Source: Phallusia mammillata
Taxonomy: Eukaryota
Assembly (NCBI GenBank): GCA_965637545.1
Contig: OZ281494.1
Location: 15,252,001 to 15,316,000 of the forward strand
Direction of reading: 5' to 3'
Length of the DNA stretch: 64,000 nt
Positions 28,051 through 31,303 of this stretch are shown piece by piece (within the stretch, counting starts at the first letter, position 1; the number at the start of each line of letters is the position of its first letter). The position numbers and the translations under genes were made by a program. Below the pieces are notes generated by a model that saw only the letters and a program-made list of their open reading frames with translations, was not told where the DNA came from and did not search any database.

Positions 28051-28486
28051 AGTTCAAACTGGCAATGGCGAAACAATCCGGTTTGGGCTCTTTCTCCCTC
28101 CCTAGCGGTTAAAGTTATCCAACTTTATTTTATTAACTGTAAACATGGCCCATGTTGTGCACTGCACAGTCTCGAAGTTTCTGGAGATTCATAGGGAAAT
28201 CTCCTTTGGTCAACCAACAGGTAAAATGCTATATTTTGTCTTGGAAAGACATATACACGTGGATTTGGCTGTTAAGAGACCTGAATGAAAGTAATTGACG
28301 TAATTGCAACTGACCTTCGCTGAACCAAAATTTTGTTGTTGAACTTGGTTGCTGGCAATCTGAACGGAATATTACGTGTCTTATTGGTATGCTACGAATA
28401 TTTTATTTTTATTACGCGTAAAACAGTTTGCTGTGGCTTTGTGATCGTAATTGGACAACGCAAAGAAAGTCAGCAGGAGCAAATTG

Positions 28487-28557
28487 TTCGTGAGGCCAGG
28501 TCATGCAGTTTCAATGCCCAGGACATGGCTTTGTTGAAATACAATCATAAACACGAA
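28487..28557 (-). promoter_or_regulatory. SECIS element (type 2) in the SelL 3' UTR
   Basis: RNA: UUCGUG-UUUAUGAU-UGUAUUUCAA-CAAA-GCC-AUGUCCUG-GGC-A-UUGAAACUGCA-UGAC-CUGGCCU-CACGAA. Helix I is UUCGUG/CACGAA. Core is AUGAU/UGAC with tandem G.A pairs. Helix II is 10 bp with one bulged C, followed by unpaired AAA and a GCC/GGC mini-helix. AATAAA signals follow at ~28402-28413. Confidence 0.85.
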
Positions 28558-28845
28558 AAACTCACTAGCTGCTATTCACTTGCGTTAAATTGATACAAAT
28601 TGAAATACAATTGAGGATTGATAAAGAAAATATAAGTACCTATATTTCGCAGTAAATTGCGATTTAAAAATGTAAAAATTACAGATTTGCAAACGTGGTA
28701 ATATCTCAGTTGAACGTTTTGTGGATTTTTGTTCTTAATATTGCACTCTTAAATCAGAAACAACATTAATTTTTGAAAAACAATAATAAGTAAAGAAATT
28801 TGCTGACGGATGTGAAGTAACGATACACAGGAAACTCTTCTTGCT

Positions 28846-30704
28846 CTACTGCTGTGCCATTTTTAATGCTTCCTGTATCTGAAGCATGCTGGGACGATCC
28901 GAGGCTGTGGGACTTCGATAAATTGCAGAATATACAATGCCTTTTGGAGTTTTTGAGACTATGAAGTCACCACCAATCTGGGTCAACAAGAAATTGGTAT
29001 GACCATTGTTATTGACCAAAGTAGTTGTATAAACAACAGTTGTGCAGGTCTAAAAACAGCTGACTTACTTGTTGAGGGTCATCTTTTATGTCAACAAACA
29101 TTTCTGGTATAGGTTCACCACGGGCCATTGCTGAGCCATAATATGATAAAGGTTCTGTGTGATATGCCTGTTAAAAATTCACATATGTTACTTGCTGTTA
29201 AAGCACATTGACAAGCTGGTGAACAAACCAAAGTGCCCCGCAATTTATTATGATTTTAACAACACCTCAAATCGAAATAACAACACCTCAAACTAACACT
29301 TATTAATATCAAACATTGCTTTGATGAAATAGAAATTTCATATTGGTTCTTTTTTTTAACAAACAGAAATAGTCAAAACACTAATTAATTATAATTATCA
29401 ATGAAGTACCTTTGCAACAGAGCGAGAGAGACCCAATGCTTTATACAGGTTGCGATCACTATCAATGAACAATGGAAAAGGATAATTCATTATTTTTAAC
29501 CACTGTTTTGCTCCTACAATAACACCAAATGTAACAAGAACCACAGAGCACTTAAGACTGGCCAAGTCTTTCTGCAATGCAACAATAAAAGATTTACAAA
29601 ACCACGTTTTTGTGCATTTTTGTACATTACCATTTCCAGTAATTATGAAACTCAACTTTTCAAAAAGATCGCTGAAGAAACAGCTATCTCATAAGGTAAG
29701 AATAAAACAGCGCTGAGTATAAATATATTTTTAAACAGTCTTTGTTCGGACAGGTTTAATTTAGGATCTACTGTTTTGAATTGTGTATTTTTTCTTCACT
29801 CTCATATTTTCATAAACGAGCATTTTTATTTTACTGTAGTATGTATGTGTAATGTATACATGCTGCATTGCACACTAATACAAAAAAATACATATATACA
29901 CCTACTCCAACTTACAAGGCAAGCCTGGAGTTCTTTTATGTGAGTTCGTCATGGAAGTCAAGCAAAATGCCTCAACAGAACAACCAAACAGTGGTCATTT
30001 CCAGTATTAAACAAAGTTTTGTCATTAAGTTTGCATGTTTGGTCAGACTCCGCATTAACAAGTTCATGATCACATGAAAACATGTCTCCTTCAGTTAGCA
30101 CTGGACCACTAGCAATTCCAAGGGCAACTTTTCGATCAATTTCAAGTAAAAACTCATTCCAAGAATCCTAAAAATAGTAGTACATCTTATAAACAAGAAA
30201 ATAAACTAAATTTGATGTTGTCTATAATTAAGGAAATATCATATAATTTGCTAAGCTATTTCATGCAATTAATTTAATTTAATTAAAGATTTTTTTTAAC
30301 AAATGAGTAACGAAGGAACAGAATCAACTGCTTATATATATATGTTTTTGTACTGTCAAAATATAGTCCTATTTTACCTCAAAGCTAATAAAATCTTCAA
30401 CAGCATTTTGCACATCAATGTCTTTGTACAATTCAATCCATTTGCTTTCAACTGCTTTTCTGTTGGGTAAGTTTGTATCAAGGCATAATTGTTTGTATGT
30501 AGTAAGAAGGCCCAGCAAAGTTCCCAATTTTTTGTCAACAAAGTAATTTGCTGATTGTGCATCTGAAAACGAAGATCTAAAGATTTTTGTAATAACACAT
30601 TAAACACCATCAAACATGATCATACCATCTAATGTTTTCTTTGCATTTTCAAGCACCTTCGTGCCGTTTTCCACAAAGTGGTTTAGTGCTTCAATTAGAT
30701 GCAT
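28846..30704 (-). CDS. SELENOL: Selenoprotein L (thioredoxin-like/AhpC fold, UxxU motif), ~302 aa
   Basis: Exons (-): 30704-30626, 30562-30378, 30167-29916, 29571-29410, 29167-29069, 28977-28846 (909 nt, phases consistent). Exon 3 reads LVVLLRHFA-TGA-LP-TGA-RTHIKELQ, with TGA at 29960-29958 and 29951-29949. Downstream VVLVTFG...FPLFIDSDRNLYKALGL...DDPQQIGGDFIV...DRPS fits the SelL/PRXL2-like family. A SECIS is present in the 3' UTR. Confidence 0.9.
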
Positions 30705-30880
30705 GTTACATTGTTAGGCCAAAATTTAGTTAAAGACAAATTTTAACAGTCTAAAAATGGATGCACACAGGTAATACAGAATATGGTCACCCAAAACACA
30801 AGTGTTTTTGTGTAAATGTCATTGCAAAATAATGCAAACAAGTAATGTAAAATATAAATATGGACACACCATTTAAATGT

Positions 30881-31303
30881 TTATTTGTGCTTCACATCTT
30901 CTTTTTTACTTTTTGTCCCAAACAGTTCATCCCAATCAACATCTTCTCCCGTTGAATTTTTCCCAGGAGGTATTTTGGGCATTAAACTTTGCATTTTTGC
31001 TGTAAATTCAGTCAAATTTCGAACACCCAATAATGCACACACAGTGACACAAAACAAGGAAAATCCACCCACTGAATAAACAGTAGCCCGCCCAAGAGCT
31101 CTCATTGCCAAACGACCCCCACTTTCCATGTTTTTTAGGTCAGGCACTTTGTCATTAACAATGTCACCAGGATCAGATCGCTTGGACTTTGCAAGCATCA
31201 TTGCAAAACCACTGAGAAATGCAATTCCTGTTGCACCGAAAATAAACCCTGCACTCTGGATAGGAGTTGGACTGCTAAGCTTGGGTTTGGTGTTCTCTTC
31301 CAT
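30881..31303 (-). CDS. TMEM242: Transmembrane protein 242 (DUF1358), intronless ORF, 140 aa
   Basis: Two hydrophobic segments and the family motif MESGGRLAMRALGRATVYSVGGFSLFCVTVCALLGVRNLTEFTAKMQSLMPKIP, recognised from memory of the family. Confidence 0.85.
   Translation of the reverse strand: MEENTKPKLSSPTPIQSAGFIFGATGIAFLSGFAMMLAKSKRSDPGDIVNDKVPDLKNMESGGRLAMRALGRATVYSVGGFSLFCVTVCALLGVRNLTEFTAKMQSLMPKIPPGKNSTGEDVDWDELFGTKSKKEDVKHK

Follow-up and report, generated by a model that had tools for sequence, protein, structure and literature searches.

Introduction

Does a spliced gene that carries two in-frame TGA codons encode a selenoprotein, or does its protein end at the first of them? This question is raised by a locus on the minus strand of a 64,000-nucleotide stretch of the ascidian Phallusia mammillata (GenBank assembly GCA_965637545.1, contig OZ281494.1, positions 15,252,001 to 15,316,000), hereafter called the window; all positions given for the locus are those of the window. 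The selenoprotein L (SelL) family was described in 2007 by Shchedrina et al., as cited in PMC3316567, PMC3473315, and PMC13134290. SelL has two selenocysteine (Sec, U) residues two residues apart, and one SECIS element serves both (PMC3316567). Within a protein that is peroxiredoxin-like, the Sec pair can join in a diselenide; tetrapods have lost the gene (PMC13134290). SelL is present in sponge, placozoan, cnidarian, annelid, and amphioxus (PMC3473315). The SelL of Ciona intestinalis is known from ESTs and is missing from the 2010 genome assembly (PMC2874816). A search of the available literature for Phallusia together with SelL found none. The original prediction for this locus, made from the DNA alone, proposed a hidden SelL with two Sec residues in a UxxU redox motif and described such proteins as forming a rare diselenide bond and as occurring patchily in aquatic animals and some prokaryotes; the rarity was overstated, the family being widespread among marine animals. 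In this study, we followed up that prediction through the gene structure, transcripts, homologues, predicted fold, and 3'UTR of the locus.

Materials and methods

Exons 1, 2, and 4 to 6 were located via splice signals, and the frame was translated per exon and in phase. Homology searches were run exon by exon. Fold evidence was taken from a natural homologue, P0015. The AlphaFold model covered residues 1-312 of P0015, with an alignment of 21 relatives and with Trp written at the Sec positions.

Four runs, drawn from four studies, supplied transcript contigs, which were placed on positions 28200-30900.

For the codon comparison, DNA was read at nine distinct homologous loci, of which six lie on metatranscriptome or transcript contigs, one on contig L022 (a JGI sample, metagenome or metatranscriptome, with a complete intronless frame), one on the genomic contig L015, and one on the Biomphalaria glabrata chromosome (L025:6639-6791). 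A MAFFT alignment of N- and C-terminal ORF fragments misplaced the RHFA ends, and the comparison was anchored on the TGA pair instead.

SECIS elements were searched for with the Rfam model SECIS_1, with a simple custom scanner, and with a covariance model (R1) built from two homologue SECIS elements. A MAFFT alignment of four homologue SECIS elements was structurally wrong and was discarded.

Results

A six-exon gene with two internal TGA codons

On the minus strand, exon 3 translates into 84 codons ending in ...CLVVLLRHFA-TGA-LP-TGA-RTHIKELQACL. It lies between a polypyrimidine-ag acceptor (...tttttag) and a gtaagt donor. The predicted reading of this exon, LLRHFA-TGA-LP-TGA-RTH, was returned as claimed on re-translation, and Leu-Pro between the two TGAs gives the UxxU spacing. 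The six exons (Table 1) sum to 79+185+252+162+99+132 = 909 nt, or 302 codons. Per-exon translation also reproduced the claim of five further phase-compatible exons and 909 nt with no other stop: the only internal stops are the two TGAs, at codons 158 and 161 of a predicted 302-residue product, and the terminal stop is TAG. As had been noted, the ORF list of the window misses the motif exon; its sole fragment there, 29958..30101, ends at TGA 1.

A minimal upstream ORF (ATG-TAA) is found at 30712-30707 (minus strand) in the 46-nt 5'UTR, where one C separates its TAA from the ATG at 30704.

Table 1. Features of the P. mammillata SELENOL locus, in order of transcription.
Feature	Position	Strand	Description
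Trans-splice acceptor (ag) for the spliced leader	30751..30752	-	Loose end of run X1
5'UTR after trans-splicing	30705..30750	-	46 nt; in-frame TAA 12 nt 5' of the ATG
Exon 1, coding part	30626..30704	-	79 nt; ATG at 30704; junction 30626/30562 in four runs
Exon 2	30378..30562	-	185 nt; N-terminal helical domain; junctions in transcript contigs
Exon 3, UxxU motif	29916..30167	-	252 nt; junctions in transcript contigs
TGA 1, predicted Sec158	29958..29960	-	Corresponds to W167 (TGA) of P0015 and C44 of human PRXL2B
TGA 2, predicted Sec161	29949..29951	-	Corresponds to W170 (TGA) of P0015 and C47 of human PRXL2B
Exon 4	29410..29571	-	162 nt; AhpC-TSA_2 domain core
Exon 5	29069..29167	-	99 nt; junctions in transcript contigs
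Exon 6, coding part	28846..28977	-	132 nt; TAG at 28846-28848; junction in transcript contigs
3'UTR	28383..28845	-	About 460 nt
Type-2 SECIS-like hairpin	28487..28557	-	Sole such candidate in the 3'UTR

The mRNA is trans-spliced and polyadenylated

The predicted exon junctions were borne out by RNA-seq. All five, with GT..AG ends on the minus strand, were present in spliced contigs of all four runs. Nor was the TGA segment spliced out: exon 3 was included in contigs of all four runs, the contigs had zero mismatches or indels relative to the window, and no junction skipping exon 3 was found among the contigs of these four studies. Low-depth contigs in two runs covered intron 3 (29572-29915) in part or in full, at depths of 6.2 and 3.6, compared with 27-79 for the spliced contigs; these are probably unspliced precursor or minor intron retention.

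At the 3' end, AATAAA occurs twice (28413-28408 and 28407-28402, minus strand), and contigs end at 28383-28395, which is 7-19 nt past the second copy. At the 5' end, transcripts of runs X1 and X5 start at 30752. The loose end of X1 at this position (minus strand) reads ...ATTCTATTTGAATA, then genomic ag. It equals the 16-nt Ciona spliced leader (SL; PMC1488885), and a search of the window for the leader sequence found it absent; hence, the mRNA is SL trans-spliced. The product of the locus is a six-exon, SL trans-spliced, and polyadenylated mRNA that carries both UGAs.

The immediate upstream neighbour of the gene, also on the minus strand (30881-31303), is an ORF of 140 codons that matches DUF1358 (TMEM242-like; PF07096) at E 8.6e-18. 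Its transcript contigs extend to at least 30723, beyond the SelL trans-splice acceptor, and both genes are spanned by contigs of two runs. The two genes appear to form an ascidian operon that SL trans-splicing resolves.

The locus is a single-copy SELENOL gene

Exon 4 matched the Pfam family AhpC-TSA_2 (PF13911) at E 1.7e-7 (32 bits; cut-off, 27). The match begins at profile position 8, which places the redox motif just upstream of the AhpC-TSA_2 model. A HMMER search with exon 4 against 1.84 billion representatives gave 54 matches, many of them C-terminal ORFs of 130-135 residues and a few of them longer. Their cluster names included 'selenoprotein L [Biomphalaria glabrata]' and unnamed models of Capitella, Trichoplax, and Branchiostoma, from species in which Jiang et al. 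(PMC3473315) reported SelL. Exon 4 alone had no match in a PDB sequence search.

By BLASTP, exons 2 to 6 were colinear with P0015. Exon 2 aligned to residues 34-94 (E 1e-11), the part of exon 3 before TGA 1 to residues 96-166, exon 4 to residues 182-235 (E 2e-16), exon 5 to residues 236-266 (E 1e-9), and exon 6 to residues 267-299 (E 2e-8). The exons were also colinear with the Biomphalaria protein P0090, to which exon 2 matched weakly (residues 39-98; E 0.003) and exon 3, again in its part before TGA 1, at residues 101-162. In both proteins, the last residue aligned with exon 3 is the one that immediately precedes the first TGA position. The locus of P0090 is named selenoprotein L in GenBank, so the predicted identity is upheld by colinearity with the product of a mollusc gene of that name. 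In the ESM Atlas, the exon-3 piece was nearest to two 161-residue 'selenoprotein L' clusters (score 0.88), which we treat as a lead only. A word search with the same piece, for which only proteins of 38-120 aa were eligible, gave no candidates and is for that reason uninformative. When the genome was searched with exon 4, the gene itself was found and no second AhpC-TSA_2 copy. The locus is the single-copy SELENOL gene of this ascidian.

Both TGA codons are kept in nine homologous loci

The original prediction would have the two TGAs align with Sec or Cys in homologues. At the same site, both codons were TGA in 9/9 homologous loci. In the genomic contig L015, the exon borders are the same as those of the window gene. 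The codons beside the conserved TGAs vary synonymously: Ala is GCT, GCC, or GCA; Leu is CTT, CTC, CTG, TTA, or TTG; Pro is CCA, CCG, CCT, or CCC; Arg is CGA, CGT, or CGC; and His is CAC or CAT. Since the flanking codons vary in this way while the TGAs are invariant, the frame appears to be translated and the TGA itself to be under selection. Judged from these DNA comparisons, the TGA pair is far beyond chance, given that both TGAs are invariant in nine other loci. The base after TGA 2 is C in all ten loci, and the base after TGA 1 is T in 4/10.

In P0015 and several other database proteins, the motif is written W-LP-W. In the encoding contigs, each W is a TGA that the gene caller had read as a sense codon (Trp). 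UniProt A0A2C9LHP9 (P0090) was considered as a form with Cys at both sites and was rejected, the Biomphalaria genome having TGA there.

The TGA positions in the predicted fold

In the P0015 model (pLDDT 91; pTM 0.85), residues 2-115 form a helical N-terminal domain, after which comes a thioredoxin-like sandwich; the TGA positions 167 and 170 fall between the strand 156-161 and the helix 169-179. The best PDB match of the model was human prostamide/prostaglandin F synthase PRXL2B (PGFS; 9usa), with E 9.6e-9 and a TM score of 0.78 by target; many peroxiredoxins follow PRXL2B among the matches. In a sequence alignment of P0015 with 9us9, which is weak alone (E 0.04), the TGA positions fall on C44 and C47. 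Since the alignment of exon 3 with P0015 extends to residue 166, Sec158 and Sec161 map, through this homologue, to the CxxC pair of PRXL2B. In the modeled homologue P0015, the UxxU motif is thus predicted to occupy the CxxC position of a thioredoxin/peroxiredoxin-like fold. The predicted alignment with Sec or Cys accordingly finds TGA in all loci that were read and, via P0015, C44 and C47 of human PRXL2B.

A SECIS-like hairpin in the 3'UTR

The 3'UTR hairpin (Table 1) has an AUGA quartet at 28548-28545, an unpaired AAA at 28532-28530, and the 3' UGA at 28503-28501 (all minus strand). Twelve nucleotides lie from AUGA to the unpaired AAA. Helix II has 10 bp with one bulge, and helix I is long, reaching 28574/28471. 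The hairpin is assigned to type 2 on account of a 3-bp apical mini-stem. When the quartet and AAA were constrained to be unpaired, the minimum-energy fold equaled the hand-drawn structure, at -27.8 kcal/mol versus -29.4 kcal/mol unconstrained.

The custom scanner returned the hairpin as the only match of its quality in the window; its expectation, with thresholds that were set after the candidate was seen, is 0.2 matches per 128 kb (40 simulated 128-kb sequences), or about 7e-4 per UTR. Neither a 5-kb stretch nor the 3'UTR gave a SECIS at E <= 10 in Rfam scans. In an 86-nt scan, Rfam SECIS_1 aligned over its full length with 13.2 bits, below its gathering score of 35; the same model gave 23.3 bits for the SECIS of homologue L011. 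Type-2 SECIS-like hairpins were found 19-300 nt past the stop in four homologues (L011, L014, L016, and L024). With R1, the window hairpin scored 5.4 bits, which is noise; R1 also missed the positive controls L014 and L024 and is therefore uninformative either way.

The proximal 3' region of L015, the closest genomic relative, had no comparable hairpin. The sole good SECIS of that contig (JGI sample 3300001689) is at L015:7727-7789 (plus strand), 2.7 kb downstream of the SelL stop, with a canonical AUGA..AAA..UGA and 25.1 bits for Rfam SECIS_1. This element may serve SelL if the 3'UTR there is long or spliced; alternatively, it may be part of another selenoprotein gene.

The P. mammillata genome contains a tRNA-Sec(TCA) gene (77.2 bits) and SepSecS exons, both above the cut-off. 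The hairpin at 28557..28487 is very probably the SECIS of the gene, and it is the weakest link of the case.

Discussion

How are the two UGAs decoded?

In our analysis, the locus is very likely an expressed SELENOL gene in which both UGAs would be decoded as Sec via the SECIS, giving a peroxiredoxin-like diselenol/diselenide redox protein. The type-2 hairpin in the 3'UTR would recruit SBP2, eEFSec, and tRNA-Sec, so that UGA158 and UGA161 would be read as Sec instead of stop and a 302-residue protein would be made. This protein is predicted to have an N-terminal helical domain that precedes a thioredoxin fold of the peroxiredoxin-like (AhpC-TSA_2) kind. If the analogy with studied SelL and PRXL2 proteins holds, its two Sec residues would stand where strand 1 ends and helix 1 makes its first turn, a site that in PRXL2B and thioredoxins holds the CxxC pair. 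As the redox centre, the pair would cycle between the diselenol and an intramolecular diselenide.

Decoding of UGA as Sec is generally incomplete. The outcome could then be mixed, in that only one UGA is decoded efficiently or many ribosomes terminate, and truncated and full-length proteins coexist in a ratio set by selenium supply. The two UGAs, nine nucleotides apart and sharing one SECIS, lend themselves to this outcome, but both TGAs are kept in every homologue, which argues that both are needed as Sec, and we regard such a mixture as decidedly improbable.

A related proposal takes the operon-like arrangement into account. SelL would be the downstream cistron of the operon, behind the DUF1358 gene for a TMEM242-like membrane protein, with a selenium-gated output of two functionally distinct products from one locus. 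Under selenium scarcity, ribosomes terminating at UGA158 would leave a stable helical-domain protein of 157 residues that has a function of its own; with enough selenium, the complete diselenide enzyme would be made. We put this forward as an unlikely possibility.

That the TGAs are true stops is very unlikely. The gene would then give only the 157-residue N-terminal helical protein, or it would be a decaying pseudogene with untranslated downstream exons. ORF callers using the standard code do end at TGA 1, and the Rfam score of the hairpin is below threshold. However, the 141 codons past TGA 2 are open over three more phase-matched exons that bear a Pfam domain, the protein after TGA 2 is conserved (E 2e-16 to 2e-8), and the nine divergent loci keep both TGAs amid synonymous variation. 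An mRNA with a stop in the third of its six exons would usually be exposed to nonsense-mediated decay, yet spliced contigs were found in four studies.

TGA followed by C, as at both UGAs of the window, is a context known as leaky. SECIS-free readthrough by near-cognate tRNAs (Trp, Cys, or Arg) into a protein that lacks selenium would suit this context and a SECIS call that is not formally significant in Rfam, but it is extremely unlikely given the tRNA-Sec and SepSecS genes, an established selenoprotein family (PMC3316567, PMC13134290), SECIS-like hairpins that recur in homologue 3'UTRs, and a TGA kept everywhere although Cys and Trp are one base change away.

Consequences for annotation

Standard pipelines get a gene of this kind wrong, as was foreseen in the original prediction: the motif stretch is absent from GenBank or UniProt models in Biomphalaria, Capitella, Trichoplax, and Branchiostoma. 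The public SelL models that omit both TGAs are P0054, P0062, P0019, P0030/P0061, and P0016, and one Biomphalaria model is named selenoprotein L. A different error is seen at L011:997-1068, where the frame truly ends at the TGA of codon 313. In the public gene call, this TGA and a further one are read through, and the 23 spurious residues that result overlap the SECIS.

The present model corrects the annotation and adds a complete genomic model of an ascidian SelL, with its exons, spliced-leader site, 3' end, and SECIS-like hairpin. It should be useful to curators of selenoproteomes, since public models skip the redox motif and callers of metatranscriptomes write Trp for both Sec residues. The gene adds to a known family, and SelL biology as understood is unchanged.

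Comparison with known systems

The P. mammillata gene resembles known SelL in the UxxU motif, the single 3'UTR SECIS (here SECIS-like), the peroxiredoxin-like/AhpC-TSA_2 fold, and the length of about 300 residues. The N-terminal extension is also common to the mollusc, annelid, placozoan, and amphioxus orthologues. There is no defining difference from SelL; what is visible here is the exon structure, the SL trans-splicing, and the operon-like place behind DUF1358.

Human PRXL2B (FAM213B; 9us9/9usa) belongs to the same Pfam family, PF13911, and has its C44xxC47 at the TGA positions. Unlike the ascidian protein, PRXL2B has Cys in place of Sec and is without the N-terminal helical domain of about 120 residues, and the identity is about 21%. 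The prostaglandin synthase activity of PRXL2B is not attributed to SelL. PRXL2C (AAED1) is likewise similar in its AhpC-TSA_2 domain and in a redox motif that follows an RHF-type strand; GenBank gives this name to some models of the same Biomphalaria locus. The PRXL2C family is a Cys-containing paralogue.
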